In this document: piece by piece, positions 191-42,570 of the stretch
Layout: the number at the start of each line of letters is the position of its first letter
Position numbering within the stretch: position 1 is the first letter of the stretch
Source: Oikopleura dioica
Taxonomy: Eukaryota; Animalia; Chordata
Direction: 5' to 3'
DNA: 64,000 bases
NCBI GenBank assembly: GCA_907165135.1
Contig: OU015569.1
Span: 2,108,001 to 2,172,000 of the forward strand
The notes under the pieces: model-generated
Databases searched by the model: none
Told to the model about the DNA's origin: nothing
Seen by the model: only the letters and a program-made list of their open reading frames with translations
Program-made: the position numbers and the translations under genes

Positions 191-3100
191 TTACCGTTTA
201 GCGTGGAAAGAGCGTCGTTGTTGAGATCGATTAGGAAGAAGGGACTTTCTCTCGTAAGTGGTGTCAGAATGAACTGATTCTGGTGGAGTGGAAATCAATC
301 GCCGGAGAGGACTCTTCTTTTCGCGCAGAATACCTTGATTTGGCCGAGGGAGGATAGAACAAGAGCTGTCTGATGAATTCTCCGCTTGGATGGCGATTTT
401 CTCTTCATGAACACTGAGAGATTTCGTCTTTGCCAGCCTAGCAGCAACTTTCGATGACCCGAGCCGTTTCCTCTCCATTTCTGAAAGAAAATATCAATTT
501 CAGCTCAATGCCCTGTTCAGAGCGGTGTGGGGAGATCTCATTCGTGTATAATAAAAAGAATGATTGACCAATCTAGCCAAGTTCAAAGATAAACTAAACT
601 CACCAGGATCGCCAGTCGGACTACGAGGATTCGTCGAGCCGCTGGAGCAAGAAATTTCATCCGTAAGAACATCCTCATCTGGAGAAGAGAAGTCATCCGG
701 GTCCCATCTGAAAAGTCGGATTAGTTGAAAATTATCAAATTAGATTTTCTCTGACCCTAGAATTGAGAGAGAGAGGCGGTGTATCTTGATGTCCGATTTA
801 GAGAGTCTCTTTGAAAGCCGTCCCCGTTTGAATGGGGACTGGGCAGTAAAGCACTTGAAAAGCATAGACAAAATTGTGTTCTGTCTTGTATCGGTTGGTT
901 ATTTTTTGTGAATGAGCTTGTGAATGAAGGAAAAAAATATAGCTGCCGAAGACCAAGCAGGGTGGCCCGGTGATAACGCTACTAAAAGACAGCGGGAAAA
1001 AGAGAAGTCTGACGTATTCCTCCTCTCGTATCGTTACTTCAAAGGAGTGAAAAATCCCTTGATTCTTGTATTAGTGTCTCGTTTTTATTAATAAATATGG
1101 GATAAATCTTAGCTCGTACCTGTAATATTTCGCCCATTTGATAGTGTTCTCTAAGTGAAGCTGTGCTCCAGAGAAACTGATTCTAATACCTAGCGTGCTC
1201 ATGCTTCTAACATTTGCAAGTTCTCTTTGAAATTATAAAAGTGGCTGATCGGCGAGCGATCTGACTCGCCGCTGAGCGTCAAAACTAGGCTCAGTCTGGA
1301 CTTGAACATGCCAAAAACTGTCCACAGAATAGCTTAATTTCCTTTCCTCTGACCGCACTGGAAAATGCGGCTTTAAATCTCAATTAGCGCCTACCCGCAG
1401 GAATATGCTAAGACTGATATTGAATCCTTAAATCAACGTAGTAATTTGACATAAAACTGAAACCTTTGGCAAAGAAGCAAGGCAAAATTCAGCATTTTCT
1501 CTGCTTTTCATTTGGAAGCAAATAATTCCAAATCAATGATGAGTTGGAGCTAAGTTGGAAACCAGCGCTTTTAGTGGTTACATCAGAGTCTCTCTCTTGT
1601 CAATATTTTATTTCTTTTCTTGAACCGCCTCTTTGCTCAATACTCAATAAATGCTTACCTTTCGAGTCGCTGGAGTAGATCACTACGTTCCATCGCCCGT
1701 CGGACAGCACTCAACGCCGGATCGTCTACTTGGACATCATCTAAGTCCATTTCCCCGCTTTCAGAAATTCGAGGAGTCGTGTACGAACAAAACAGTGAGT
1801 TTGGTCGAGGTCTTGGACGCGCTCTCGGTGATCGCGTTTGAACATCTTTTAATGCTTCGTACGATTTCGTTCTAGCGATATTCGATTGAAAAGATTCCAC
1901 CATCAGAGAAATCTGTGATGCAGTATCGGAAGCTGTAGGCGAAGTTGCAGACTTGAAACAATCATCGTCATCATCGTCGTTGAGGTACTCGTTGTTGTCT
2001 CCATTTTTGACCGGGGACTCTTTGATAAAAGACTTCGTATCGGATAAGCATGACGATGCAGATGTGTCTGGGCGGTCGGAGCCCTCCTCTATCGTTTCTT
2101 TGGAGATTTCTTTGACGGAGAGATTCAAGTCGATTTCTTCGTCGACGACCATTTCGTCACCGACGAGGTCGATGATGCTAATTTTTGACGACATTGACGG
2201 ATTTCGAGCCATATTAGACGCTATTGAACTTGACGTGCTGGGCTTTCGTTCTTTTTGTACAAGAACAAGGCTCTTTGGGCGAGCTCTTGTTGTAGAATCT
2301 TCGGAGAGGACAGAATTTTTGGGTGGAAGATCTGGGGGAGTTTCATTAGATGGCGACTCGATATCGATCAGTGCAGGATTAACTTGAGGATCTTCTTGGT
2401 CAACTTCTGGCACATTTCGCTTGATTTTAGGGTTACTCGCTGGAAATTGCGACGATAATTTTTAGGCACTTTTGGCGAGAATAAATTTCCAATTGACCGG
2501 CGCTCCGTTCCCGTTTGCGTTTGCTCTTTTTCAGTAGCGACTGGTTTTTCAGGCTTGATGTCGAGCTGTGGTTTCGAAACTTTCATTTGCTTCCGTCCAA
2601 ATTTAGGCGACATTTGTGAAAGCTTCGAGAAAGTCGAAGCGATTTTTGACTTTCCATCTCCCTTTGAAGGAGCAGTTTTAGGACTTGTAGGAAGGTTCTT
2701 TGTAGGTGGTTCAGGAGATTTATCGCTTGTAGATGTGCTTCTTTGAGGTAATGGCGGCGGCTCGACTTTCTTCGTCGCCGTTTCTTGAGGTCGCGCATCA
2801 GATTCTTTCAGAGTTTTCGGTTTCCTTAGATTGGACGGCCTGGTTGAGCTCGATTGCGAAAGTCTTCGTACGATTTGCTGGGAGGAAGTTGATGCTGGGG
2901 CAGGTGCAGCTGGGGCTACCCTACTCTCTGATTTGGAGGCGGAGACGTAAGGCAGTCGGGTCCCATGGGGCACTTCGGAGGCAGCTTTGGCAGTTGGGCT
3001 TTTGATTCCTGTTTTGAAAGTTGGTGGCCTAATACGCGATGAAGACATAGAAGAGGACTCGGTTGATAATCTTGAAGAAGTCGTCATCATTTCTGTTGTC

Positions 3101-4183
3101 TCCTTCTTCATTCTTGTTGATTTCAGGGGGAGGGAGGTAGGTTTTTGGATTTGACTTGTGCGAGCAGTTTGTTTTGCAGGCGTTTGCTTTTCAGGCAACT
3201 TGGGTGGCACTGGTTCAGCAGGGTCTACTGATAACTTTGAAGTTGTGCGCTGCGGCGGAGCTGGCGCGGTCTTTGGGCGGACCAGCCCCTTTGTTGACTT
3301 TGTCAGTTTTGAGGGAGTAGAGCAAGTCGAACTTTTACTCGTACCGACTGCAGATCGTCTCGGTGGTTTAGATGCATTTGTCGATGCTACCGAGGATGCG
3401 CGGGATGAGTTGGAGGCAGATCGCGGTCTCGGAGGCTTCTTTTCTATTTTCTCTCGCATCTCCGGCTCTAAAAAGATGATAAAAAACGAATGCAAAAAAT
3501 AAGGAATCTACCTAAGTTAAAGCGTACTCTACTCATTTGAGGGAATATTGCGATTCCAAGTTCAATTACGCGTCCATAATTTTAATCTATGGCGCACTAG
3601 GGAATTCCTACTCGATGATTACTCGTCATTAAAAGTAGTTCACCGCAAAATGGAGTCCAGTGGATTCTCTACGAATACAAATATGGTATCTGTAAATCAT
3701 TGCCTCCTTTTTCGGCGGGGTTTAACATGTTCTCAGATCTTCTGAGACATTAAAGATTTACGGATACTATCTGAGCAATTATTGATCTCAATCATGAGGC
3801 CAATGGTCGTGTGCCTAACTACGAGCCCTGCCCTCTAACGTAAATGAGATGTTGGGTTCATAGGCGGGAGGAATTAGACAAAACCAGCCACTTATCCGTA
3901 TCGATTTAACTCGACCAACATCTGGCCTTCCAAAACTCTCCTGATAACTAACTGATCCTCCAGTAAGATCGTGACAGAAGCTGACCACCCAGTCAAGCTT
4001 ATTCGAGCGATAATATGGATGGAACTTACCGCTGGGAGTTGTCGGTGTCTTGCTCGGTCGCTGGAAGCCAAAGCCGGACTTTGGATTAGCCTTTGGCTGC
4101 CCAACTTTGGATTCGCTAGCTGCACCTCTGTCGGGAGTACTTTTTACGGCACTGGGGAGATTTCGCTTTGGTAGTCGACTCAT
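191..4183 (-). CDS. Multi-exon gene for a large Ser/Thr/Pro/Lys-rich, probably disordered protein of unknown family
   Basis: ATG at 4183 (MSRLPKRN) follows a tttag acceptor. The first exon ends at a GTAAG donor near 4029. A long exon pair (ORFs 2368-3495 and 1655-2413) can be joined by a 50-nt GA-AG intron at 2440-2489, and there is a GTAAG donor at 1658. A small exon at 604-707 (WDPDDFSSPDED, GTGAG donor) precedes the last exon at 191-480, which follows a tttctttcag acceptor. Exons between 708 and 1650 are unresolved. Confidence 0.6.
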
Positions 4184-7032
4184 CGTCCTAAATAGCATTT
4201 GTTATGACAAGATCTTGAGTTATTAATCAATTTCCAAAACATGAGCACTTGAACGCATATTCTGCCACTGGAGTGTTTTGGCAAGCGCTCAAATCTAGTA
4301 CCGGGCAGCGACTCACGAGGAATACTCGAACATGGAAATGCCGCTGCTCAACAAAGAGAAACATTTTCGTTGAATACTCAGAATTAACGAGTGAAATTGT
4401 GTCAATTGTTGAAATTATATTTGAAAATAGACTTTAATATGTAATACTCACGCATCAATCTCTCCTAGAATAAGATCTACTTCAATAAAAAACTGTTCGT
4501 CTGCCAAGTTATCTCTCATCGCTTCAGAAATTCGAAAATCAGCGAAAAAAGCGAAGAGTGTTTTTTGAGTTTGCTCCCAACTGTGTGCCCAGATTTTGGG
4601 CTGTAATTAATCCCGCTTATAGCAGATCGATGCGGGAGTGTTTTCAATTCCATCCCGCTACAATATCCTTAATCAGCTGGAGCTGCTCGCCTTGAAAGGC
4701 TCGAGCGCTTTGGGCACACAGGCCACGCTCGCATGGGCTCATTCGAGTCCCTTGGGAAGACCTTCAAGGGATTCCTAAATGTCAGGACCGACGGGTCGCA
4801 TTGAATTTCGAGATTAATTTTTAATGCGCTCAATACCGAAAAATCGTATGCACGCTACGGTACTGGAAAGTCTTTTTAGTTTTTTACTTACAGTGATTTT
4901 CTGCTTGTTGGTATCTGTGGCGGTTTTATTTTTGTGATCGCTTGTTCTTTTCGTGTCTCTCGTGGCTAAATGAACCAAAATTAGATGTCAGCTTTGCCCC
5001 TGTGTGCCCGATAGGAAGATAGCCTCTTCCTTGATCTCATTGAAAAATAAAAATATTTTGGGCCCTTATCGCGGTGTCGTACTCGAGTCATAGCTGGTCC
5101 AGAGTTATCCAGAGTGGCCGACATTGCCTTCGTCAAAAGATCACAGTCCGTGAAACAACTACCTTTTGTCCCCAAGTGTGTTTGCGTTCGTGTACATATC
5201 CGGCCGCTCAACTAGAATGAGCACTTTCAATTACTTTATTTACCAGAACTCAAGTACTCTTCACAATTAAAGACAAGCTCCAACTACCGGCACGGTCACT
5301 GTTTGATGACTGTATATTTTTCACATACAATTTTTCTAAGTAAAAGTAAACCACTCTTTTATGTTAATAAACGGAAGTTAATTGTATTACCAAGAAAAGA
5401 TTCATTTTCTCGAGTGGCCACTTGTGCAAGAAAGCGTTGAAATTAGGGTTTAGCGAGGGTGAGCACCTGGAGAAAACGCTAGAATAGGAGCGAATGGAAC
5501 GTCCGAAGGTACTTGTGATCAACCAGGTCGAATTACAATGAGTGACTTCCGGCTGCGCGAGTGTAATCATGAGAATAAATTTAGAAATAAATGACTTTTA
5601 CAAAGAATCAAAATATCGAATAGCGGATGCTCTTTGTCAAAAGCATTTATCAGAATCGAGAATTGGAAAATTCCGAAATTCCTTGTTTGGCATTTCTTGG
5701 ACTAGGCGTGAGATTATCGTGCTGAGGCCTTTATCAACTGACCGCAATTGATGTGAGCTCGACCGCGAGAATGGGCGCAGGTTGGCTGCGTTCCTACTTT
5801 TTGCTCACTTTTGAAGAAATTTTAGGATTTCACGCGCCGTCGCGGTGAATTCGCCAAGGCAGTGCTCTTTGATGGTCCTGACTGGGATCACTTCTATCCG
5901 TTTCCGGATTATCCCGCGCAAAGAAAATAATAGGCAGAGGCGAAGGTAAGAACCATGAAAGAGCCGAAAAAGACTCTTGAGATCGAGGAAAAAATGACCA
6001 GGGCGAAAAACTCTCTGGAAATAATCAACTAGTTCTAACCTGTTGCTCAGTTCGAGGCTTCGCATTCTCTTTTTCTTCTTTGTATCGGGATAGGTTGTAG
6101 CAAAAAGCGAGGACTGCGTCTAAGTCACCGTCCAAAATTCCTAAATTTTCATTTTGAATATTCTCCGATCCCTTTATTTTCCTGCCTTCGAGTCCATCTG
6201 TTCGACATTGGATTTTTGAATATTTTAACACATTTTTGGAGACTCTTGTAGGGCCCTTATAAGGAAAATTATCGATTCGCGTGAAAAAAAAAACCGGACA
6301 GATTGGGCCCGGAAGAAATTCGCTGCGTTGAAATAGGTCAATAGCCGAAATTTTGATAGCAAATGAAGCTAATTTAGTATCGACGCGGCTCAGAGCGCAA
6401 CACATGGCGTCTTTGATCCCTCTAAGCGAGGCAGACGGCTTCTCAAAATGAGAAATTGCATAGAGGGTTTTTAGTTATTCTCGAGTACTTCGTTCTGTCA
6501 CGACCGTAAAACCTACTTTCTTTATTTGCTGGTGGTAAATAGAAAGCGTTCAAGATTTTCAATTTCGTCCAGTTAATCGCAATGAATTGAGTTTCAAAAA
6601 AAAAGTTGACAGGTATGGGCTTGTGTTTTGATCTAAGCGAGCAGGATGATCTCGGCTCTGTTGCTTCTCGCCAGCTGAGTTTTTAGTAAATTGGAAAACT
6701 CTGAGAGCGCACGGCAGCTGACTCGTCTAGATTATCCCGCACCGCCGAACATGAAAACGAGAAATCCCCATTCTGTGCCAAAAAAATAGCAACACTCCGT
6801 ACGCCGACTTTCCTTATCCAATAAAACACCTAAAATATGGAAATCAAATCTCCACCGTCTTAGGTTTTCTATTTTGGCTTCGGATCAAACGGAGGAAAAT
6901 GAATTCCCAGTACTCCATGATTACGGCTTTGCTTCTAGGGCGAGTTAAAGGGTGTGGTTCCTCATGGAATGTCAATTAGAGGCGCGAAAGAAATAGTTTT
7001 GCCTTCTTTGAAATCAACCTTCTTGAGCTAAT

Positions 7033-7617
7033 GGCCAATTTCAATAAGGAGTTGAGATTCGAAATCCTAGCACCCCCCTTTCTTGTGCTCATTAGAAAGA
7101 GCGCAAAAAGTTACGCTAGAAAATAGTACTTTTAGAGGATGAATCCCCGAAAATGACGTCACGATGACTCATTGAAGTTCCAAAAGTCCAAAACTTTGCC
7201 ACGCTCTCATTTTTTTTCTAGAAATGGAAAATTTGAGTTCGATACAGGAAAATGATCGTCTTGAGCCACTCTACCTGAAGAGCTACATATAAAAGATCCA
7301 ACTCAAGAAAACTCTAGAACTAAAACTAGAAAATTTTTTTTTCTAGAGGTGGATCTTTCAAATGTAGCTCTTCAGGTAGAGTGGCTCAAGACGATCATTT
7401 TCCTGTATCGAACTCAAATTTTCCATTTCTAGAAAAAAAATGAGAGCGTGGCAAAGTTTTGGACTTTTGGAACTTCAATGAGTCATCGTGACGTCATTTT
7501 CGGGGATTCATCCTCTAAAAGTACTATTTTCTAGCGTAACTTTTTGCGCTCTTTCTAATGAGCACAAGAAAGGGGGGTGCTAGGATTTCGAATCTCAACT
7601 CCTTATTGAAATTGGCC
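7033..7617. mobile_element. 585-bp foldback/MITE with 256-bp perfect inverted arms and AAT target-site duplication
   Basis: 7033-7288 is the reverse complement of 7362-7617, checked block by block. Termini are GGCC...GGCC, with AAT at 7030-7032 and 7618-7620. There is no coding capacity. Confidence 0.92.
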
Positions 7618-14848: not shown

Positions 14849-17800
14849 ATGACAGAAACGAAGAATCACGAAGATCAAGAAGTCTTCCAAGGCGATATTG
14901 TCTCGTTCACCGACGGTAATTTCGTTAAAAGCGATTTTGAAAAGCTAATTTATGAATTCAGAAAATGGCAAAATCGTCCGCGGCGTGGTCGAAGTCTCCG
15001 GCCTCGATTCAGAAAGCGACATCCTCGAGAGCATGGAAAACGCCGAGCTTCCGAAAGACATGGTGAAGATCTTCACCTACCCTACTCACGAGCTCGTCGA
15101 CAAAGAGATGAAAGACGTAAAGCTGCTCGATCGATCGCTCATGGTCGGCGACACTGTCAGACGAGGCAAGAGTGGCGAAATCGGCACTGTAGTCGCCCTC
15201 GAGATCGAAAGTGACGTGAGAGTTCTGGATACGAACATGGGAATGAAGAAAATTTCATCCAAAAGGTTTATTGAATCTATTTTCGATCCACTAACGAGTT
15301 TGAAAATAGATTTGAACCGTTCGTTCGCTTGAACGAAGGAGATAAAGTGGCTCACAATGGATGGATCGGACAGATTCGAGAGCTCGAAGAAGATAAAATA
15401 GGGTTGACGACGACGCACGGACGATTAGATTTGGAGGACGATGGTCAAATTAATCCAGACTTTCGCTTGCTTTCATCGAGAGGCGTTTATGAGCCAATTG
15501 CGGATTGGAGAAGGAACGAAGAAGATTCTAGTGTTTATCTTAATCAACAGGAAAGGCTTATTAATAACGACTAACATTTCCGAAAGGATGTGATTTATTT
15601 ATGTTTGTATCTTTTGAGCCAATAATCAGCTCCATGGCGCCTACTCAAAAAAGGGAGACGATGCATTCGCGGTTGTGACCGATGTAGGCAACGGTGATGC
15701 TGAAGTCAACTGGGTTGCGTATGGACACAACGAGCAAGCGGAAATGCCGAAAAACGAGTGGTACTCTTCTGAGCTGTGGCAGTTACAAGCTCCGTGGCTC
15801 GAGGAAAATATTGCAAACACAGAGGGACAAGGAATCACGCTCGGGGCCCGTTACAAGATAAAATTAACAGACGAAGAAGCGAAGAGTCTCAACTTCTTGA
15901 GAAACAACCCAGAAGCTAAAGAATTCAACGGTTCCAAAGATGTTCAAGTTTGGCAGTCGCCTGAGCCGCTGCAGACAGAGAAAGAAGTAGAGATCTCTTT
16001 CAATGATGTAATTGAACTGCTGTGGAAGATTACCGACCAGACAGAAGACGAGACTGCGCCCTGGATAAAAATCGACTTCGGCAAATATTCGGTGATCACA
16101 TACGAAGGCGAATCAATCTGCAAATATGACTCAAAGAGGGGAGAACGCGTTGCCGAACACATCAGCTGCTTGTTTGAACCGATTATCTTTGGAAAGGTCG
16201 ACAAGGAAGGTACGAAGCAGGAAGTGGCGCGGCGGACCGAGCAAGTTTTCGCAGAAGTTGGAAAGATACTCGGGAAGCAGTTTGAGCCAGACAAGTTGAA
16301 GATACACATGAGTCAGTTCACGATGGAGTCAGCGGGCGAAGGAAAGTGGAGAAAGTTCAGAACGATCATTAAAGAAGATCCAAATCTGAAAGCAGCTCTG
16401 CGCGGCCAGGGCCACTCAAAGTACGAGTTCAAAAAAGAAAACTGCATTTCCGTCGAAGTCACCGACTATTTCGCCAAGTGCAAAGTTATGTGGCAATCTG
16501 GCGAGACTGGAGAATATCATTCCACACAACTCTTCCCTGCACTTCATATAAATGATCACGATTTCTGTCCAAGTAAGTTAAATTGTTACTCTTTTTGCTA
16601 ATCAAATGTTAGCCGATTTCGTCGTTCGTGAAATACGCGAAAATCTTGAGGAGTGGGGAAACGTCATTTCTGTCGATTTCGTCGAGAAACAACTCGTCGT
16701 TCAGTGGCATATCGACGATCAAGAGAAAGAACGAGAAACAGTCTCCGTTTTCGATGTGGTGGACCACCCCGATTATAAATTCCGCCTAGGAGAGCTTGTA
16801 GTTGGCACGGGCACTTCTGACAGTAATCCTGCCGGTGTCGGAATGGTGCAAAACATCTTGCCTTCCGGAAAACTTGAGATCTTGTGGGCGGACAGGACAG
16901 AGTCTCTTGTTTTGCCGACGCATCTGATCTCAGAATATGTACTCTTTGGTGATGGCTATGATCACGATGATGACATTGACCCAGAAGACTATGCCGAACT
17001 AACTGGTTAGAAATTATCAGAATTTTCGATCCTGATGTTATTTTAAGATGGCGAAGGAGATGATTGTGATAGCTCGGATGGCAGTTGGGAATCAGAAGAC
17101 AGCGATGTCGCAATGGACGAGGAGAGAAAACTTGAATTGGACGAAGAGCTCAAAGGCTTCATCAACGCCTCGGCAGGTCCATCTGAAGCGAAAAAAATCA
17201 AGTCAGAGGAGGATTTGGAAGCTCGCGTACTCGCTTATGTCTACGCCAACGGAACAGGTTCGGGAACCGTTATTTTTTAATCAAATTTGAATTTATTCTA
17301 AGAGGAAAGTTGTCTTGAAAAAATTGACAAGCTGGAAGACATAGACGAGGAGCTGAAACGAATAAAACAAGCAAAGAAGGAAGTCAAAGCTGAAATGGCG
17401 GCTGAAAACCAAAGATTGGAAGAGAAAGCAAATGAAATGATTGCGGAAATTACCGAGCCGGCTAGTAACGATGTGCCTCTTGATGAGCTTGGTGAAGGAA
17501 CGGATTAACATGAACAGGTTTTTATCGCCTAAGAAACGTCTCATAAGTCCGTCAAAAGTACACTATTTTGAACTTCCGAGTCCAACTCACGCTTACTACA
17601 AAATCAAAACCGAACATCCCAAGGCTTGGTTCATCATTTTGTAAAGCAGAACTCTTAAATTGGATGAAAATGAGTAACCAACAAAAAAGTCATTTTTGAA
17701 AATCTACAACGCCGAAATAAAGCGGCTACAGACCTCGCTCCCGAAAGGAATTCACTTGTGGACCTATGAAAGTCGCCTTGATTTGTTTTCTTTTGCCATC

Positions 17801-18660
17801 GAAGGTATTAACGATTGCAAAACGAAATATCCTTACAGTCTTTTAATAGGGCCGGCTGGAACTCCTTACGAGTACTGTCTCTTCTGTTTCGACATCTGTC
17901 TTCCAGAAGGCTATCCGCTTACATCTCCCCCCAAGGTCCACTACAAATCCGCCATCAAGCAAAAGTATGATCCCCTATAATTTTGATTCGACTTGAGATT
18001 TTTTTCAGAATCAATCCAAATCTTTACGATACTGGAAATGTTTGTCTATCACTACTTGGAACATGGGCGGCGAAAAGAGACTCTGAAGACTGGAATTATC
18101 ATTCAAATCTTTTGCAGTTGTTGGTATCGCTTCAAGGTAAATTTGAAAGATCTCTCCACAAGTTGAACTTATAAATTTAGGTCTAACACTCAACTCCGAA
18201 CCTTACTACAACGAAGCTGGCTACGATCGCCAAAAAGACACTGAATCTGGCATGGAGAACGCCAAAAGTTACAACGAGTTTATCACAGTGAAGCTCTGCG
18301 ACCACGTGATCTCAACTATAAGGTAAAGAATTGGAGGAAACCGCAGTGAGTAACATCAATGCTAGAAACCCGGGAGAGCCGTTTGAACAGCTCGTGAAAG
18401 ACTTCTATTTCGGCTCCGAGCTTAGCGAAAAAGAGGGCATCTTGGGCAAGTTTATGGAAAAGGTGGAAAACTTAACAACCGAAAGCCCAGACGATCTACC
18501 TTATCCGCTGCTTCCTATCTCAAAAGGCTGTAAATCCGCACTATCAGGTTCTATTTTCTATTGATATTTATTTTTGCTAACCGCCTGCGTAGTGAAACTG
18601 GAAAAGCTGAAAGAAATCAAATCCGAAAACGGAGAAAAGTTCACCTCTCCCCTTGTCTAG
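14849..18660 (+). CDS. UBE2O: E2/E3 hybrid ubiquitin-conjugating enzyme UBE2O, multi-exon
   Basis: N-terminal conserved region ([14 protein letters not shown]) and a C-terminal UBC domain ([64 protein letters not shown]). The last exon ends ...KFTSPLV* at 18660. Confidence 0.92.
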
Positions 18661-18834: not shown

Positions 18835-21800
18835 ATGAGCGGGAAACAGCAAAAATCCATCTTGTCGTTTTTCAACAAGACTCCTAATGCCAAGTCCAGC
18901 GGAGGGGTTACACCTTCAAAATCAAAGCCGCCAAAGACCAGCGTCGGGTCATCAGAAAAGAAGAAGAAATCGTAAGTTCTTCCACTGTAAGTCTTCTCTC
19001 AACCAATTCCTAGTCCTTCGTTGAAAGAAAATAGAAATGATCCGGTCGCGAAGAAGCTTGATCTCGGAGCCTCAGGCTCAAAGTCCAAGAAAGCTCGGAT
19101 TGACGATGAAGAGTCGGAAGAAGAACTGAAGATACCGCCCCGAAGAAGTACTGGAAAGCGACGACGAGCAATAATTGAATCTGACAGTGATGACGATAAG
19201 GAAAGCGGCTTATGATTTATTTTAGACATTGCGTAATTCTCGATTATCTCATTTTTTGAAATTCATTACAAGCCCGACTGTAGGGTCCAGAAAAGAAACA
19301 GAAAAGCTCCCGGAAGCGAAAGGAATCCGAGGATGACGATTTCAAACCCCCAGGAGATGCCGAGGAATCATCGGATGATGCAATGGATGTTTCCATCGCT
19401 GAAAGCGAAGACGAGACGATGTCTGAGCCAGAAGAATCTCCAAAGAAGAAGAAAAAACCCGTTGCACGGGCCAAGAGTACTGCTGCTCCAAGAAAGCGAA
19501 ATGTCAACACGACGATGAACGATATGAGCGTCTTTGCTGCGGACAATGACGAAGACGGCGAAGGCTCATCCGAAGTTGTATGGGCGCATGAAGAGCTAGA
19601 GTGGCTCAAACCCGAAAACATCAAGGACGCGAAGGGACGAAAGTACGATGACGTTAACTACGATCCAACTACACTGCATATCCCCGATGCCTACATCAAA
19701 TCGTTGACTCCAGGCATGGGAAATTGGTGGAAAATCAAGTCCCGCAACTATGACGTAGTTATATTTTACAAGGTCGGCAAGTTCTACGAGCTTTATCATA
19801 TGGATGCAATCATTGGTGTTCAAAACTGCGGCATCACCTTTATGAAAGGAAAGTTCGCCCATGCTGGCTTCCCCGAAATGCGATTCGATCATTTTGCTTC
19901 AATGCTCGTGACGAAGGGATTCAAAGTCGCCCGAGTCGAGCAAACTGAAACTCAGGATAACAACAAGGCCCGAGTCAAAGAGTCCAAAGACTGGAAGGGC
20001 GTCTCTAAGAAACTTGACAAATTCGAGAAGCAGACACGACGAGAAGTCTGCAACATCGTCACACCAGGAACACGAATGGCCGCCTTCAATACCCATGACG
20101 ATCTCGGCCACAAAGAAGGCCTCTTCGCTTCTATCTTCGAAGCAGATAAGACTATTGGTGTTGCCTTGGTAGACACTTCCACGAGTGAGTTGATCGTTGG
20201 CCAGTTTGGCGACGACACTTTCTACTCAAACCTTCGGACTCTTCTCAGCCAGCGTCATATTTCCCAGTTGATGAAGCAGAAAAAAGCCTGCCTTTCACCA
20301 AATCTCTTCCAGGTGCTTTCGGCCACGAGCAAGGGAATTTGCTACGATGATCTCCCCGACAAGAGTTTCTTAGAGCTTGATAAAACGAAGAAGATCATTC
20401 GAGAGATCGAAACTGAAAAAATCAAAATGGATACGCTATTGGAAATCTGCGACGCGAATCCTGTTGGTGCGCAAGCTCTTGGAGCTTTGCTCACACAGCT
20501 CAAGCGATATGAAATTATCCATGAAGTGCTCCGAACAAGTTCCTTTGTGCAATACGAAACGGCGGAAAGGCTGACGAAGAAGGTTGTGACTCAGCAGCGG
20601 ATGGTTATGGACGCTGCCACCTTGATCAACCTTGGAGTGACGCAGGGCGATGATCTAGGATCGACAAATGCCCCCGAAATCCGGATCGGGTTTTCGTCGG
20701 ATTTTCTCGAAGTCTGATTTTTCCGATCGGGTTTTTGTCGGGTTTTCGTCGGGTTTTTATCGGATTTTCGTAGGGTATTTTTCGGGTTTTTGTAGGGTAT
20801 TTTTCGGGTTTTTGTCGGGTTTTTGTCGGGTCTTTGTCGGGTTCTTGTCGAGTTGTCACAACACTGAAGTTGAATCAAGTAAGATGAATCCAAATGGGGG
20901 AAAATAGACATAATTTTTGGCTAACAGAATTTCGGGTACTGTCTTTAATCAAACTGATGAGTAGATCCGAAGAGAAACCCGACGAAAATACCCTACAAAA
21001 ATCCGATAAATGACCCTATAAAAACCCGATTTTGTAGGGTCGCCAAAATTTCAGCGTCGGGTTTTTGTAGGGTCGGCAGAATCCAACAAAAACCCGAGAA
21101 AAACGTCGGTTTTCGATCGGATGTCGGGTGGGACTTGTCGATCCTAGGCGATGATGGATCAGAAAGAGGGTCCTTGCTGCGCAAGCTGGACACGTGCTGC
21201 TCTCCTGGAGGAAAGAGAAAACTTTGGGAGACAGTCATTTCTCCTCCTGCAAACGCAGATGTCATTCGACATCGTCAAGGTACGACAGATATAACTAGAA
21301 ATCCCATATTCATAATTTCTTTCTGCCTAGAATGCATTAAAGCGCTGATGGAGGACAAGGACTTTTGCAAAGATGCCAGAAAGCTGATTTCTGGTCTGCC
21401 GGATCTTGCCCGTCTCATCAGCCGCTTTGGGAACTTGAGCTTTGGAATTCGGCCATCCGATCACCCCGATAAGCGCGCAGTCATGTACGAGGAGATTCTT
21501 TACAACCGCCAGAAGACTCGAACTTTTTGCAAAGTCCTCTCTGGTTTTCGCTCAATTGATTCCTGGATAAAGAAAGTATCGGAAACCAAGTACGATCTAG
21601 CTAAAATCCTGCAGCTTGTTGATAACAAGAGCATTGTGATTGACGATCTCCTGGAGACTTGGAAAAAGACGTTTGACATGGAGAAGGCCAAGCGAGATGA
21701 AAAACTCACTCCAAAAGAAGGAGCGAACCCTCCTTTTGACGATGCCGTCAAGGAAATCAAACGGATCGAAGGTGAAGCCGAGGCTTTCCGCTCAGAAGTC

Positions 21801-23066
21801 GCCGATAATTACGGTCATGCCAAATTGCTCAAATCTGGAAAGCTGTATTTCGTCATTCAAGTCCGCGATACAGTGAAGCCCCCTCATGAATGGACCTCCA
21901 TCGGACTCAGCAAGGGATTCAAGAAATACCAAGCGCCAGAGTTGGATGAGCTCAACAAAGAAATGGACCGCCAAGTCAACTTGAAAGACATAGCCTTGAG
22001 TGAAGCTTCTTCAATGATTTTTGGCAGATTTTACGAAAGTGCTCCCCGATGGCTAGCGATCGTCAAAATAATTGATGAGTTGGATGCCCTCATCTCACTC
22101 GCAAACTATGGAAATTCCATCGAGGAGCGATGCTTCCCAGAGATTCTTGATGATGGCGAAGTTCTTAGGTAACTATTGCGTTTTACTAACCACTTATTAA
22201 TTTGAATACTTCAGCTTCACTCAAGGAAAGCATCCCACTGTTGACCTCGCCAATTTTATTCCAAACGATGTTGACTTGGAAGACGGTGGGAAATGCATCC
22301 TCCTAACCGGTCCAAACATGGGCGGTAAGTCTACAATTCTGCGACAAATTGGTCTTCTCGCTATTCTCGCGCATTATGGATGCCCTGTTCCTGCCGAAAG
22401 CATGCAGATCTCGCCCATTGATCGCATCTTTACCCGACTCGGAGCCTCTGATCGCCTCCTTGCTGGTATGACTTTTCAACTGAAAATATCAATCACCGTT
22501 TATTATTCTAGGCGAGTCCACATTTATGGTGGAGATGGCGGAGACCAGCTCAATCCTGAAGAGCAGCACCAAGCAATCTCTTCTTTTGCTCGACGAGCTC
22601 GGTCGAGGAACCGCCACCCACGATGGGTCTTCAATCGCTCAAGCCGTTCTAGAAAACCTCTCTTCCAGAAAGGTCCGAACAATTTTCTCCACTCACTACC
22701 ACACCCTCTGCCTCATGCTCCCCGCTGGTTGTGTTTCTAAACACATGAGCTGCCACGTAGAAAAGGTAATTCCAAACCGACTTATTGTCGACAGAAAGCT
22801 GACACATATTTTAGGACGAAGAAACTGGCTTGGAGAAAGTCACGTTTCTGTACACTCTATGTGACGGCCATGCTTCGCGCTCTCATGGATTCCACGCTGC
22901 TAGAAGCGCCGGAATACCCGATCAAGTCGTCCTCGCCGCCCAAAGAGCTGCCAAAGATCTTCAAAAGTTGCACAATGGACTTCAATACATCAACCATTTC
23001 AAACGGCAGCGATTTGAGAAGGCGCAGCACTTCAAGTTCATCGAATGCGATGACCAGATGGTATAG
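18835..23066 (+). CDS. MSH6: DNA mismatch repair protein MSH6 (MutS alpha subunit), multi-exon
   Basis: PIP box QKSILSFF, mismatch-binding motif [11 protein letters not shown], Walker [19 protein letters not shown], Walker [11 protein letters not shown] and FSTHYH. It includes a GA-AG intron at 19201-19283 and the MITE-derived intron at 20647-21147. A further short 3' exon to about 23148 is possible. Confidence 0.97.
20655..21147. mobile_element. 493-bp MITE inserted in an MSH6 exon (candidate introner)
   Basis: 13-bp perfect TIR CTAGGATCGACAA / TTGTCGATCCTAG. TSD GCGATGAT at 20647-20654 and 21148-21155 (9 bp if the last TIR G is counted). Many TCGGGTTTT / AAACCCGA subterminal repeats. Confidence 0.93.
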
Positions 23067-23371
23067 ATTACCTATCAGCATTTTGTAGGCTCCTGACAAG
23101 TTCATTTATCAACTGCCAAGAAATTTTACGAATAAAGCCTATTGAAAAACCAAAGATCAGTAAATGCTGTTAACAGGCAACTCACCCACGCGTTATCGTT
23201 CTTATTTCGTTGATCTTGCATTTATTGTAACTGATAATATTTGCCCAAAGACTTTGAATCATCAAGAACGAGCCAAAGTCAGAACTTTTCCATTCGCCAA
23301 AAATTCGATTGGACTAAGGCAAAACTTTTATCGCCTGTAGAGAATCTCTAGATGTTATATTTTTTTAAAAG

Positions 23372-23383: not shown

Positions 23384-23396
23384 ATTATGATCAGAC

Positions 23397-26300
23397 ATGA
23401 CTGAATCGTTAATCCAGCTCAGATTTGGGACTCGAGGGGAACCACCTAAAAGTGCCATCAGCAACCCGCGCAAAACTGTTGATGATTTCGTTGAAGAGTT
23501 TCGGCGAGCAAAAGAAATCGTCGCGGTCAAAGAGCGCGAATCCAAATTCTTGACCGGTATCAACAAGGTAAGCCATCTTTTTGATTGAATGCGGTTATTC
23601 TCGGTGTAGTTCTCTGAAGTATTCGAAGTCGCAGAGGACGAGTATTTGTCTAACCATCCAGATCCGTTCGATGAACGCGCTCCGTTTTCAATTGTGCCTG
23701 ACTGTTCCCTTGGAAAACTACAGAAAAACCTTTCAGAGTATCCAGGCTTGTTTTGAAACTCGTAAATCTCCTCAATGAGAAACTCGTTTCAAAGCTAAAA
23801 TCAGAATTTCTCGATGAAGTTATCGAAGACTGCATTTTGCGCGCGACATGCAAAGACCTCCAAAAAGCAACATGTCGACTTCTTTTGCTGACGCTGCCCG
23901 GATTCGAAGCAGCGGCGACTTTTTCATCGTTTGGAGATCGACTTATCCCCAAACTTCACAGCTGGGCAGAGCTTCCGCTTTCAAATCCGCTATCTGGATA
24001 CGCTGCGGGTTTTCTTGGCCATGCGATGGAGTCCAGCGATCTTGTGTCCGACTATCGGACCATCAATCAACGACTCGTCCCAGTCGTAATTAGACGACTT
24101 CAAGAAGCAGTGGAGAACCTCCGGCCACGGCCATTTCCCCACTCATCTTCGCCCCCATCCAAAAGAATGCGACATTCCACCTTAGAAATCTACGACGACA
24201 GTGATTCCCGCGGCTCTTTCACATCAGAAGCTGACCTGAGACAAGAACACAAGCTTCATCCTCTAGGAAATCCTCGGAAAATCGTCCTCTACTTGCAGTA
24301 CTTGACGCCCATGGGTGAGTACTTTGACCAACTTCCGTCATTTATGGAACACGACGCACTTGGAACGGTACTGGACCTTCTGGACATTGGAGATAACATC
24401 ATGAAACTAGAAACGTTGAAACTACTCTCATCGATGCTCTGCCATAATAAGGTAGCGCTGGACTTTGTCAATCGAAGCGGGTTGGAGCGACTAACAAGCG
24501 TGAGCAAAAGCTCAAGAGCTGGTGCAGCAGTTGCTGTTTGTCTGTATTACCTCGCATACAACGGGGACGTGATGGAGCGATTTTTTCAGATAAGCCGCGA
24601 AAAGATGAGGGGCGTAATCAGTTACGCTTTGGATCTGATCGAAGTAAAGCATGATTCCGCCCGAGTACACTCAATAATGTTCTTCACGTATATTCTTCTC
24701 AACCCGAAAAACCGGGTGATGCTCCAGATCTTCGACGAAAAAGACGGTGTCCGGCGAATATTCAACGTGATCTCGACCATGTCAGTTCTCCAAAACGGCG
24801 ACATTGAAGACCAAGAAAGTCATGCTGAGAAAACGAGCTGCAAGATGGCATCTGTTTGTTTAAAACGATATATCGAGAGGAATATCGTCTTGAAGGCTGA
24901 AGCTTTGGGAATAAATACTGCTCTTTACCAACTAGAATCGAACACTCAGTCAACCGGCAAGAAAATGTCCCTCTACGATCTCGCAGAGAAGATAAACAAT
25001 TATGGGACTGGCTGCTTTCTATCAAAGATGGGCTTCTTGCGAAAGTTCATACATATGAAATGCATCCGAACGCTCCTTCGTCTTGCTTTACGATGTGCGG
25101 ATTGGACGGGCTTCACTGGGCGCATAGAAACGATCCGTGCCTTGATTGACATCGTGGCCATTTGTTCGTTGTCTTTTGAGGCGATCATGCAGCTTTGCGA
25201 ACCCATTGTGTCTGAGGATTTCTTTGAGAGTGCCATACAATTCAGAACACAGGCTCCCCCGGCGGACTTAGATAGTAGGCATCCGTCTGACGACCACCGC
25301 AACTGTGGCCTCAGTCTCCTTTTGCTTATGGTTGAAGATAATAGTGAGGATGGTCACTTCTTCAGTGAAGAGTATTTTACCATCTATCGCCGTTGTATAA
25401 TTTTTCCTTGTAGCATTCGCGCCTCTGCTCTAGACATTCTGAAATCAGCCTGTTACGTTTCACCGCGGCGAAAAGCCAGCGAAGTTGTATTTGGTGTTCT
25501 CCAGAAAAACCACGGCATTCAAATTCTCATTAATCTCATGGACAATCCAGCGTTACGGTATGAACATGATAAAGACCTTGATAAACAATATTTTTTAGCA
25601 TTGGGGCGACAATAGCCCTAGCAGGAATCGCCCGCCTTGATCACGTGAAACAAATTGTCAGAAAAGTGCTCCAGCCAAAACACATCGTGCGACAGTTTTT
25701 CCTTGGCGATTCTTCGAATCTTGAAGACTTCCAACGAGCACTGAATCATCTCTCAGATATTTCTGGAATGCCTAAGTACAGTTCTGAAACTTGGGATATC
25801 GAAAAAATAACGAGGCGAAATGAGATCCTGAAGAATACAAAGATTCTTGTCGACCAAAAGGAGATCTTGCAATTAGTAGAGGCTCATCTACGTGAGGCTG
25901 GACTGCCGCAAACAGCGGAAATGCTCAGAAACGAGGCTGGAATATCATCGATGAATTACAAGTCCGCCTTCAAAACTCCGCGCCAACGAACCAGTTCCTT
26001 CGATGAAAATGCGCTTCCAACTCCACGATGTACTGCTCTCAGTGAAATTTCGACAAACGTTTCTCCCCAGAAACCGACTCAACCTAAAATACGATTTTCA
26101 AATGCCAGCAGATCACAGAATTCATTAACGTTCTCAAAGACCGTGTTGCCTCCGAATGTTCCTGCTAAACAAGAAGAATCAGAGGAGCCCGAAATCCTCT
26201 TTAGCCTCACAGATGCCGTTCGATCATACTTCCGCGAACAGTGGCATGCAAAATGTAAAAACCCAATATCGTCTTGCCCAAGATTCTCAATCTATAAACA

Positions 26301-28260
26301 ACACAAATGCCCAGAAAAGCGTCCTGATCCGACTCCAGTACCACTGCCGATCCGTCTTAGATCCCGGAAAATTAAAAACTATCGTGCCGGTGACCGAGGA
26401 AACATTTTGGACAAGCAATTTGTTTGGAATAGGTTTAGATCGATGCCAGTGAATATTCGCACCCCTGCAGATCAAGGGTTCTAAAAACGGGCGACCGTGT
26501 TTGACTGAAGACGCAGTTCCAAATACCGCATTGTTCATTCGTAAATGAAGGCGTTGTTTTAGTGATAATTGCGAATAAGGACCTTCGTCTTCTAGTTATC
26601 TCTAGTCAATCGTTTTTTGAACCTTTGCTCCAGATCAACACGCGACTGCCTGTGCGTTGAGTACCAATGAGAATCTCCTTATTGTTGGCAGTACCAACGG
26701 GGATGTTCTCATGTACGACACGAACACTGATCACAACCAGGCCGCTTACAATTGCTGTGAGAATGCGATCATTCATATTGGAGTGACCGAACGATTTGTG
26801 ACAACAACGCAGCGATACGGGTCGCATCCAACCACTCTTTGGTCGTTTCCCGATATGGACATTGTGAAGGATTTCGAAGACCCAGCGGTGATCTGGGGAG
26901 AATTCGCAAAGCACAGCAATCGATTGGCGCTTACTTGCGAGAAAGAATGCATTCTCTACGACGTGGAGACCGATAAGGTTAGACCTGATCTTAGACGTCA
27001 AATTCAACTTTATTTTAAGGCACTCTTGAACATTCCTTACATCGATTTGGGCTGTGGCTATGAGCAAAATAGGACCTTTTTTGGACCTGGTGACGATGTG
27101 TTCCTATCCGACGGATGCTTGTGGGATCTACGAAGTGGCAAAAAGATAACCCGATTCGACAAACTGAACCAGAACGTCTCGGGTATCTTTTGTTCCTCCT
27201 TAATTTTATTAATTAATATTTAGGTATCTTTCATCCGACCCAGCCACATGTCATCATCAGCTCTGAGATTTGGGATATAAGGATGGTGGATTCGAATAGA
27301 ATTCTAAAGCAGGTACCTGAGCTGCGTGGAATCTGGCCGCGATTCACGCCAAGAAGCGACGCCATGTTCGCAGCAAAGTGGTTTTCCGACATTGAAAACC
27401 AGGATATTTATGAGCTGGATAGCGTGATAAAGATTTATGACCCGATGGATTATGAGTGAGTTGATTATCATGTGACGGAAATTACAGCAACTTTAGGAAC
27501 TTGGGAACATGGAAGTTTGAGTCTAACAGATCGAAAATCCCACGGCGGAAAGTACTGGATTTTACAATGAACAAATCAGAAAGAATGGTGAATGTTTTGG
27601 AGTCAGATATGAGCAAGCACGTTCAGGTAGAGCTTCTTACTTTCTCAGTTTGTAATTTTGTGGATCAGACGAACTGCGTGAGCGCGCGATGGTACCAGAT
27701 TGGAATGTTGCAGGACGACGATGACGAAGAGTCCGACAATGCGAGCGACAACAGTGATAACGATTACGGCGGAATGGGTCGACGCCCACATAGAGACGAG
27801 ATGGATGACTTTACGGACGAAGAAGGATCGGATTATGAAATCTACGAAGGCCCACGGCTTGGGCTAGGACACCAGTCTCGGAGGTCAGTTTCTATTCGCG
27901 CTTCTACGCCACCGAGTCAACGGCCCAGCGACGTCCTGAACAGAGACACGCGCATCGTCAGTCTTCGTGAGAGTCCTCTGGATCCGGTGGTCAACGCCAT
28001 GCAGCAAGCTAATAGAGAGCGAGAAATTCAAGTACCGCCCTCAATCAATCGATCACCGTCTATTCCAGGCGTTATTCCAGATGATGGAGACGAAGATTGG
28101 GAAGGCAAGGGACAAACAGTTTAGCGATCTATACGAAAATTCGTATAATTATTAAAATAATTATTTTATCTCTTCGTCACGTAGAAATTAATAGTATCAA
28201 TTTGTTTACCCAAAGAAAGATATTGAAGAGGAACAAGGAGAGTCCGAAGGCAGTGCGTGA
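23397..28260 (+). CDS. DCAF1: DDB1- and CUL4-associated factor 1 (VprBP), multi-exon
   Basis: HPDPFDERAP near the N-terminus, an ARM-like middle region, LisH (QKEILQLVEAHLREAGLPQTAEMLRNEA), YFREQWHAKCKNPISSCPRFSIYKQHKCPE, WD40 exons (FDKLNQNVSG-IFHP) and an acidic tail. Confidence 0.92.
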
Positions 28261-37221: not shown

Positions 37222-37793
37222 CGGGTGCGCGTCGTTTGCTACGGTTTGGGGGGTTTGCGTATATTTCTACGATGCGTATATTTCTACGGTGCGTATATTT
37301 CTACGGTCAAAAATGAATCATAGGGACCGTAGCAATTGACGCACAGTTTAGGGTGGGCAAAAAGCCGGGTCGGTTTTGTCGGTTATTAATAAATTAAAAG
37401 AATTTAAAGCTATCTAAGTCGGTCGGAACGAGTGTCTGGCCGGTTTTCCCTTAAAAAAAGATGAAATTCATCATGAATAAGTATCATACTTTGACAATGC
37501 TTATTCCACCAAGGTTTAAAATTATTTTCCTTCATATTGTTTTCATTTTTGTAAGGGAAAACCGACCAGACACTCGTTCCGACCGACTTAGATAGGCTAG
37601 ATAGCTTTAAATTCTTTTAATTCTATTAATAACCGACAAAACCGACCCGGCTTTTTGCCCACCCTAAACTGTGCGTCAATTGCTACGGTCCCTATGACTC
37701 ATTTTTGACCGTAGAAATATACGCACCGTAGAAATATACGCATCGTAGAAATATACGCAAACCCCCCAAACCGTAGCAAACGACGCGCACCCG
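37222..37793. mobile_element. 572-bp foldback/MITE with about 245-bp near-perfect inverted arms
   Basis: Termini CGGGTGCGCG / CGCGCACCCG. TSD AGTAATT at 37215-37221 and 37794-37800 (8 bp with the overlapping G). Each arm has a 17-bp unit GCGTATATTTCTACG(A/G)T three times. The arms differ by a few substitutions and small indels. Confidence 0.93.
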
Positions 37794-40179: not shown

Positions 40180-42570
40180 GATTTGCTTACGATATCGAAG
40201 GTGAGTGGCGAAAAAAGATCGTCTTCGTCGTTTAGAGAGAACTTCTTGCTGATCACGTGAATTTTGTATTCCATCGTTTCTTCATCAATGTTCTCGTCAG
40301 CGGCGAATATGAACAAGCCCTTTTACTGCTCAATTCTTTACGTCTTTCGATCAATAAAAGGCTGTAGCTTGAGCGGTTTCCTTTGAAATTAGGCAGTTTA
40401 TATGAGCACCAGGTATAGCTACATGTTCGACAATGTCAGTTCCGTCGACGGTGGATGAGAAAATGGTGTCACCACCTTCGGCCCAATACAGCTTTTCTTC
40501 TTTATCGTCAAATGCCATGGCACTTGTTTCATAAAATGTTGTATTCTTGAAAAGAGGTCTATCCATATTTATTTTGTTTTCTTTTTGAAAAGAATTGAAA
40601 TGGCCATATTCAAAGTTTACAGTTCAATTCTCTTGGCTTTTCCTGTAATGTTGTTCTGATAGAAGCTTCCTCGAAAAGAAACGAGAACTTGAGAGCTTGT
40701 AACTGAGAGGGATTCCCAAGGAAGACCAATGATAGGATGAGCAAGGGCAATGGAAGGCCTCCGATCTAACTCAAGATTGATGCTTCCGATAACAGAAATA
40801 AGCTGCTCTGTCTTGAGAATAAACCAGATATAGTCTCGAGAAATAGATAAGTCAATGATTTCGCTTTGGTCGCTGATCAAGAAAAAGTTTTCTTTTACCG
40901 AAAAACTCTCGTTTTCGGGCGATAAGGAGTGAAAGTGGACGACGGAAGAATTCTTTGTCTAGTTGCACAAAAAATAATCAACTTTTCTCGCTAAAAAATG
41001 TGTAACTCTTCCTTGACTCCATAAATTAGAAATTTTCTTTTGTCGTCTATCACAAATGTTGTTACTTGGCCTTCAACCAGGGTGGAACGTTGGGACCGGG
41101 CAAGTCGGGCAAACCGGGCAAAAAATCGGGCGGGCGTGCAAATCGGGCGGCGTAGGGCTCGATTTTACGAGGTAAAAATCGGGCAAAGTCGGGCAATCGG
41201 GCAAAAATCGGCGCCCGGAAAAAGTCGGCGTCCGGATGAAAAAATGGCATCTTATGGGACATTAATACTGAAATTTTCTTTAAAAACGTCCGGTTTCGGT
41301 TCTCCATGAGTGCCCTTCTTCTTTCGAGATACAAAATAATCCTTCCTCTTCAATAAATTTACATATTTTTTGGTTTTGGGGTTGCCGAAATTTCCGGGCA
41401 AAAGTCGGCACCCGGGCAAATCGGGCGGGCAAAAAGTCGGGCGGCCATCGGGCGGCGCCGACAAAAAAAAATTTAATCGGGCGGGCAATCGGGCGGCCAA
41501 ATTCAAATATTTTGCCCCAACGTTCCACCCTGCTTCAACAGATGCTAGAATAGGAATCGAGGACAGCTCTTGTTTCAAGTGCACTTCTGGATTGACACTT
41601 ATTTCGTAAAATACTGTCTTATCCGTTGTTTGATTGTAGCCATCGTAGACGAGTTTGACTCCATCATCGCAGACGGTAATATCGCAACTTTCCCACCTTC
41701 TTTCGGGATCTGTTGTGTAGCACCAGGCTCCTCGCAAGTCCAAATGAAGGTTCACATGATTGCGTCGTGAGTTTGTTCTATAATAAAGCCTACTAATTGT
41801 AAGAAGCATAGAAGCAAATCTGAGAAAAGAGAATGAACCCAATCTAAATCCGGATTTCTGCAGAAGTTGTGATCATTTGGAGGCTGCGGCACTGCTTTTG
41901 GCACGTGAGGAAATGTTTCATTCCATTTCTGACAAGTTCGTCCAGAGAAAGTTTGAGAGAGCGTTCCATTATAAGTGAGACTCGTATTGTGAGGCCAGCA
42001 TGTCTTCTCTTGAAACACCGTCTTCCATGTGATTTGAAAGCCCTCGCCGCTTTCTGATCCGTCGGTGAAAAATAGCATTCCAATTTTAATGAATCCTTCA
42101 CTGTTAGCTTCGAATGTGAAAGAAGTAGAATTGCCTCTGCAAAGTGTTTTTATGTTCGACACACTTCCGTAGTTAGATACTTCGAAAATGCTCAGTGAAT
42201 CCCATAGACATGGAAGATCGTTCTGCTATTCGTTGCAAAATAAAAGTAAGTTATTACTTTTGAATCCTACTTCTGAAAACAATCGTTCTTCGCCCAGTTT
42301 CAAGTAATCCACTCGCAGATGAACCCTTTTAGGGATAGTCGTTCCGACTGAAGTGGGCTTATGAAGCGTTTTTTAAACATGAGAGACCAACGTTATTCTC
42401 GTTAATCAAACACTTTCCTGAAGATGCCATCGACAGTTGATGCTGCTTTCGTAAATGTCTCCAAATGCTTCTCGGGAAGAAAGTAAGCCTCTAGCCACAC
42501 GAAAGGTTTCGCCACAAAGACTTTGGACACTAGAAACTAAGAAAAACTTAAAAAGGTGCATCATGCCCAT
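40180..42570 (-). CDS. Secreted CUB + kringle + YWTD-like beta-propeller protein, multi-exon
   Basis: Signal-like start MGMMHLFKFFLVSSVQSLCG; CUB (CGETF...NCRWHL...CLWDSL...FFTDGSESGEGFQITW); kringle (YNGTLSQTFSGRTCQKW, NFCRNPD, AWCYTTDPERRWESCDI); propeller-like exons (MAFDDKEEKLYWAE). The 3' end is approximate. Confidence 0.8.
41078..41532. mobile_element. 455-bp MITE inserted in an exon of the CUB-kringle gene (candidate introner)
   Basis: 17-bp TIR CAGGGTGGAACGTTGGG. 7-bp TSD CTTCAAC at 41071-41077 and 41533-41539. Dense AA(A/G)TCGGGC subterminal repeats. Confidence 0.93.

Follow-up and report, generated by a model that had tools for sequence, protein, structure and literature searches.

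Insertions of the maize transposons Ds and dSpm in exons are said to be spliced out of the transcript through sites in or beside the element termini, according to work by Wessler and colleagues in the late 1980s and 1990s. Introners are known from many marine eukaryotes (PMC11282704), and introns with non-canonical borders derived from MITEs (miniature inverted-repeat transposable elements) have been described in Fritillaria borealis (Henriet 2019, as recounted in PMC11282704 and PMC13326754). The chordate Oikopleura dioica has a high intron turnover and an even intron-phase distribution (PMC3488318; PMC11067885), and 11–12% of its introns are non-GT/AG (PMC8008620). In this species, GA-AG introns are commoner than GC-AG introns, both are supported by RNA, and the non-GT donors follow the context AG/G.A, in which the slash marks the exon–intron border (PMC7072748). 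Our full-text literature searching returned no paper on MITE-derived introns in O. dioica. Here we describe a 493-bp transposon that interrupts a coding exon of MSH6, a DNA-repair gene, in a 64,000-nucleotide stretch of O. dioica contig OU015569.1 (assembly GCA_907165135.1, positions 2,108,001 to 2,172,000 of the forward strand). This whole stretch is called the window, and all positions are given in its own coordinates. The MSH6 element was recently inserted by cut-and-paste transposition and is still polymorphic. That carriers remove it in frame, so that the gene would be rescued at the RNA level, we hold to have a probability of about one half.

The element occupies positions 20655–21147 and is non-coding; its borders agree between a direct reading of the sequence and a repeat finder. 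The left terminal inverted repeat (TIR), CTAGGATCGACAA, was located by both methods at 20655–20667 on the plus strand. Its partner at 21135–21147 on the minus strand is the reverse complement of CTAGGATCGACAA and ends in CCTAG, with the AG at 21146–21147. The TIR pair matches at 13/13 positions, and pairing continues to 34 nt at 74% complementarity. Two perfect 8-bp copies of the target-site duplication (TSD), GCGATGAT, flank the element at 20647–20654 and 21148–21155, both without strand. The direct repeat is 9 nt long, owing to a chance identity of the element's final G with G20646. A subterminal array of 11-bp repeats resembling GTCGGGTTTTT spans 20685–20853 on the plus strand, with inverted copies at approximately 20975–21104. 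All 15 matches to this unit in the window fall inside the element, versus 0.03 expected. The insertion point lies in the large MSH6 exon, at the beginning of MutS domain III. A first-pass annotation of the window had claimed a 493-bp TIR/TSD element in this conserved MutS segment, bringing in-frame stops; the sequence read and the repeat finder bear out the element, and the stop is present as well. With the element retained, the first in-frame stop on the plus strand is a TGA at 20715–20717, which would truncate the product ahead of domains III–V. Reading on from the exon into the element would run into CTAGGATCG. An exact-sequence look-up of the truncated open reading frame (ORF), 19383–20714, gave no record.

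An empty-site allele, which the first-pass annotation had proposed to seek in other populations, was found in sample X30. The sample bears another organism label and was guessed to consist of DNA; its contigs match the window at ~97.5% identity. In a 2878-nt X30 contig, position 20645 is joined straight to 21147; 501 nt are skipped, and the joint is ambiguous over 9 nt. The contig has a depth of 49, equal to that of the single-copy flanks, and holds one copy of GCGATGAT. Since the X30 contigs retain the MSH6 introns unspliced (18972–19013 and the four downstream), they represent genomic DNA and not complementary DNA. The joint is thus the exact empty site of the MSH6 element, which means that the insertion is young or polymorphic, and this is our main new result. 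At the loci of three oikopleurid relatives (52–58% identity, including Tara Oceans metagenome contigs), the sequence is continuous through the site with equal spacing, and no copy of the element family was found there.

Although the MSH6 site itself is empty in X30, the family is not absent from that sample. We matched 386 X30 contigs, nearly all of them on the element, and the summed word depth over it was 1600–5900 versus 49 in the flanks, a 30–120-fold excess that is not to be read as a copy number. The element family is therefore highly repeated in X30. It is also present in wild plankton RNA libraries, where it is either transcribed or carried over as DNA. A 163-nt contig of metatranscriptome X1 (record 3; maps to 20654–20758) holds the left end of another copy, with a different AT-rich flank that ends in TTTTTAGT and looks non-coding. 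The window sequence as such is found in marine plankton metagenomes and metatranscriptomes. Within the window, the 13-mer TIR has no exact occurrence elsewhere, and only one copy of the family is present there.

We scanned the whole window for exact TIRs of 10 bp with TSDs of at least 6 bp, using five shuffles as the control. The scan returned the MSH6 element, two more elements and a long palindrome, while 5/5 shuffles returned nothing. The 8-bp TSD, the short TIRs and the subterminal repeats suggest a place in the hAT superfamily, as a non-autonomous element, and the 493 bp at 20655–21147 (unstranded) may be described as a hAT-like MITE. This assignment leans on the TSD length and on traits that we take to be typical of the superfamily. 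Short TIRs of the YARNG type are the hAT consensus; the present TIR starts with CTAGG and matches YARNG only after its first C is set aside. Other traits of hAT MITEs are the 8-bp TSD, the small size, the lack of transposase coding capacity and the presence of multiple copies, all seen here. The ORFs of the element gave no Pfam family and no protein relatives, including in a protein search with a 79-aa ORF, and no autonomous hAT partner with matching termini is encoded in the 64-kb window. When folded as RNA, the element forms a single long hairpin that has the TIR pair at its base (dG −207 kcal/mol, z −9.4). Rfam plant microRNA hairpin families matched the element below threshold only, a generic hairpin resemblance. 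A metagenome scan with CTAGGATCGACAART returned 120 loci, each with a single match and no further words in common with the element, and these were set aside as chance.

The host gene runs on the plus strand from an ATG at 18836 to a stop at 23064–23066. Its product contains the Pfam domains MutS_I, II, III and V, its closest named homologues are MSH6 proteins, and an ESM Atlas look-up placed it in the MutS family. Direct reading of the sequence also gave the ATPase Walker A motif GPNMGGKST and, at the N-terminus, a PIP-box-like QKSILSFF. Apart from the insertion, MSH6 is intact, with all MutS domains present. Short plus-strand GT-AG introns of 42–51 nt lie at 18972–19013, 21280–21330, 22169–22214, 22466–22511 and 22766–22814. 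Splicing of the first is seen in an RNA contig from metatranscriptome X1 (record 1), and the remaining introns were placed by homology and reading frame. RNA reads from a diverged lineage have loose ends at 22813 that match the exon ending at 22765, which fits splicing of 22766–22814 in a relative. The second intron of the gene has ambiguous borders: 19187–19290 (GT-AG, 104 nt) and 19201–19283 (GA-AG, 83 nt) both keep the frame, and in the latter the donor AAG/GAAAGC matches the published non-GT context; the RNA contigs do not overlap this intron. Neighbouring genes are tightly packed on the plus strand, with a gene for a ubiquitin-conjugating enzyme (UQ_con) upstream (17678–18171) and a large solenoid and WD40 gene downstream (23391–27000). 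This gene density fits O. dioica, as do the 42–51-nt introns.

How could a carrier of the filled allele still produce MSH6? In the history that we propose, a non-autonomous DNA transposon would have landed in the large MSH6 exon at the start of domain III, and a permissive spliceosome, in a species with reported introns that begin with G plus any base and end in AG (hereafter GN-AG), would excise the element as a newly formed intron. Most economically, the donor GC at 20647, in the left TSD, would be paired with the acceptor AG at 21147, in the right TIR, a register that would return the ancestral mRNA exactly. The hairpin built on the TIRs may bring donor and acceptor within a few nucleotides of each other, despite an intron of tenfold length. 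This candidate GC-AG intron (20647–21147, plus strand, 501 nt) comprises the left TSD and the element and is defined by geometry; the same removal gives the empty DNA allele.

With 20647–21147 removed, 1026 codons are open, from 19293 up to the stop at 23064–23066. Across the junction, this frame is collinear with the three oikopleurid relatives and four full-length MSH6 proteins; in two relatives, a gap of 5 residues falls precisely at the insertion point. The 9-nt repeat allows ten registers with identical mRNA, and only 20647–21147 has ends of the GN-AG kind. The element's acceptor CCTAG/ matches, in all five bases, that of the MSH6 intron 21280–21330. In addition, the terminal CTAG is palindromic, so an AG acceptor is available in both orientations. 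Several proposals of the first-pass annotation are upheld by these results, namely that a GC (20647) to AG (21147) excision takes out the element plus one TSD copy without a scar, giving an open collinear frame by the removal that also yields the empty allele of X30, and that the CTAG termini offer an acceptor either way round. Its further proposal, that the element forms a seamless intron, holds for the geometry and is not supported for intron formation, given that the geometry has a 25% chance, the GC donor is weak and no RNA crosses 20646/21148. Likewise, the GC-AG geometry of its single splice route stands, and a second in-frame donor, the GA within the TIR that adds 12 nt, had been missed. 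That carriers use the scarless GC-AG route is a tentative proposal, which we place clearly short of even odds.

A number of observations weigh against in-frame removal, and against the scarless route in particular. The scarless geometry is itself expected by chance. In simulated insertions over this exon, the TSD starts with G at 25% of points (GC 6%, GT 3.6%), so a geometry of this kind is unremarkable; it is expected for 25% of insertions, and for GC specifically for 6%. The GC donor, AGG/GCGATG, is weak and lies outside the AG/G.A context of O. dioica non-GT donors (PMC7072748). One base upstream, the donor CAG/GG fits that context better and, used with the acceptor at 21147, shifts the frame; an enumeration of all frame-keeping, stop-free GN-AG pairs around the element gave it no in-frame AG partner. 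At 501 nt, the candidate intron is ten times as long as the other introns of the gene (42–51 nt), and its acceptor AG lies within a stable stem, as does the GA donor.

Searches of RNA and protein collections also gave nothing at the junction. No read or contig crosses 20646/21148 or 20658/21148 in RNA runs X7 and X8 or among the X1 contigs, whose coverage (18818–19136, 19387–19689 and 21564–21771) is off the site. X7 and X8 are 2026 oligo-dT RNA runs under the same species label as the window. Their reads match MSH6 at only 90–95% and are confined to its conserved 3′ part, 22786–23107, which places them in a diverged lineage and makes them uninformative on the junction. Protein collections held no junction-spanning protein or contig, and a query with the 100 residues upstream of the site returned no short junction-spanning fragments. 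Among protein representatives there was no near-identical full-length MSH6, and the best match was a 185-aa fragment at 83% identity. Judging from the X7 and X8 identities, the species label spans deeply diverged lineages. Cryptic lineages of O. dioica have been described (PMC11067885), and many runs under the same label lacked any of the sampled window words, as expected for such lineages (PMC11067885).

The filled and empty alleles differ at 16 listed codons, 12 synonymously and 4 non-synonymously. These differences show that purifying selection acted in the past, and they do not speak to selection after the element landed. The intact remainder of MSH6 is equally uninformative on that later selection, as the insertion is young and X30 lacks it.

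The strongest competitor to in-frame removal is that the filled allele is null or strongly hypomorphic. It would be a recent disruptive insertion caught in the assembled haplotype, whose transcripts either run on to the stop at 20715 or lose the frame through mis-splicing. We judge this to be not far below an even chance. Such an allele could persist as young, as recessive or as tolerated in a laboratory line. In other animals, loss of MSH6 is not known to be lethal. In X30 the site is found only empty, at full depth, as would suit a recent disruptive insertion, and transcript evidence was absent from the RNA runs and protein collections searched. The weak donor context, the frame-shifting competitor donor, the atypical length, the acceptor in a stem and the ordinary chance of a scarless geometry all favour the null allele too. 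Against it, another gene that appears intact also carries an exonic element, an unrelated one at a distance of 20 kb. In total, two of the three TSD-flanked elements of the 64-kb window lie in coding exons of apparently intact genes, a small sample. If each were null, the load would be heavy; the proportion is easier to accommodate if such insertions are tolerated. At such a density, null alleles within a single assembled haplotype would be surprising in a species with strong purifying selection.

In-frame removal could also proceed by a second register, in which the TIR's own CTAG/GA at 20659 would serve as the donor. The alternative candidate GA-AG intron (20659–21147, plus strand, 489 nt) lies wholly inside the element and ends at the same acceptor, CCTAG/. 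Its use would leave 12 nt in the mRNA, 8 from the TSD plus CTAG, and thus a scar of four residues (QGDD-LGDD-GSE) in a loop of variable length. This is the sole other nearby GN-AG pair that has AG on the exon side and keeps the frame. It makes no demand on the target sequence and has the same form whichever way the element is oriented. Among the non-GT introns of O. dioica, GA-AG is the most frequent class, and the conserved upstream AG is present. The 12-nt scar was stop-free at 67% of simulated insertion points in this exon, i.e., in 2/3 phases, and the site falls within a loop where relatives differ by five residues. On the other side, the donor lies inside the TIR stem, its +3 position is T where the conserved base is A, and no RNA read or contig searched crosses 20658/21148. 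Splicing by the GA-AG route in carriers appears improbable to us. A mis-assembly that misplaced the element into the exon is more improbable by far: nothing specific speaks for it beyond the repetition of the family in the genome, while a perfect TSD and perfect TIRs mark the borders to the base, and what separates the filled from the empty allele is the element together with a single TSD copy, no more and no less, the signature of transposition and not of a chimeric join.

A broader reading extends in-frame removal from this locus to the family. The hAT-type MITEs of O. dioica might act as instant introns, with the permissive GN-AG spliceosome clearing fresh exonic insertions. The palindromic CTAG ends would supply a built-in AG/GA donor and an AG acceptor in both orientations. 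Moreover, the 8 nt of the TSD and the 4 nt of CTAG sum to 12, so the scar would be in frame at any site, and the transposon would be self-neutralising. We regard this generalization as speculative and, on balance, doubtful. If true, it would provide a concrete source of fast intron gain, of even intron phases and of the 11–12% of non-GT introns.

An unrelated TIR element at 41078–41532 has a TIR beginning with CAGGGTGGAA, a 7-bp flanking repeat (CTTCAAC) and its own subterminal repeats. On the minus strand, it interrupts a kringle-domain gene within a coding exon, between ILASVE and GQVTTFVIDDK, and its visible in-frame removal leaves 3 additional nucleotides. The third TIR element (37223–37792, 570 bp) has a 9-bp TSD, GAGTAATTC, a long TIR from GGGTGCGCGT and an internally palindromic body, and it lies in a region without a clear conserved coding frame. 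A near-perfect palindrome of ~575 nt (7038–7612) produced nested TIR matches and palindromic pseudo-TSDs in the scan.

The origin of new spliceosomal introns in animals is largely open, and Oikopleura is the classic case of fast turnover without an accepted mechanism. At the locus described here, filled and empty alleles of one exon coexist in a DNA-repair gene of the essential type. Should carriers remove the element by splicing, the locus would show a chordate intron at its birth and would serve as a direct assay of the borders that a permissive spliceosome uses. If they do not, it is a natural MSH6 knockout, relevant to studies of mutation rate in a fast-evolving lineage. The empty-site allele, the repeated family and the second in-frame route extend the first-pass annotation, and, as far as we searched, an origin of introns from MITEs has not been published for O. 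dioica.

Comparison with known systems places the MSH6 element among transposons that reside in exons. In maize, Ds and dSpm are likewise reported as non-autonomous hAT-type elements in coding exons that yield in-frame mRNAs, wild-type-like or slightly altered. The maize cases involve a plant host, canonical splice sites and a removal that is usually imperfect and is reported to have been shown experimentally, whereas the MSH6 case consists of sequence geometry. The introners of Micromonas, Aureococcus and other, mostly marine, hosts are also short, non-autonomous TIR/TSD transposons (Huff et al. 2016; Gozashti et al. 2022; PMC11282704). They draw one splice site from the element and the other from the TSD and so leave no scar on removal, an arrangement that the MSH6 element shares by geometry only. 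Introners further exist as hundreds of spliced, RNA-supported copies with canonical sites and a 3-bp TSD, in contrast to the single exonic copy, the 8-bp TSD and the GC (or GA) donor of the MSH6 element.

Closer in host are the introns of Fritillaria borealis, which belongs to the same animal class. According to the second-hand accounts of that work, they resemble the MSH6 element in having TIRs, lineage-specific positions and an attributed origin from MITEs, and their removal is credited to a permissive U2-type spliceosome. As given in those accounts, most of their borders are AG-AC or AG-AT, and they are fixed, spliced introns, whereas the MSH6 insertion is polymorphic and its candidate borders are GN-AG. 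Among the frame-keeping borders at the MSH6 site, none is AG-AC or AG-AT; all are GN-AG. The GN-AG introns of O. dioica itself (GA-AG, GC-AG and GG-AG) form a class that covers both candidate border pairs (PMC8008620; PMC7072748). The published examples are short and RNA-supported, with AG/G.A donors, and a transposon origin is not stated for them in the searchable papers. Taken together, the sequence suggests that the MSH6 element is best seen as a transposon insertion with introner-like geometry, whose nearest precedents would be the Fritillaria introns, the algal introners and maize Ds.

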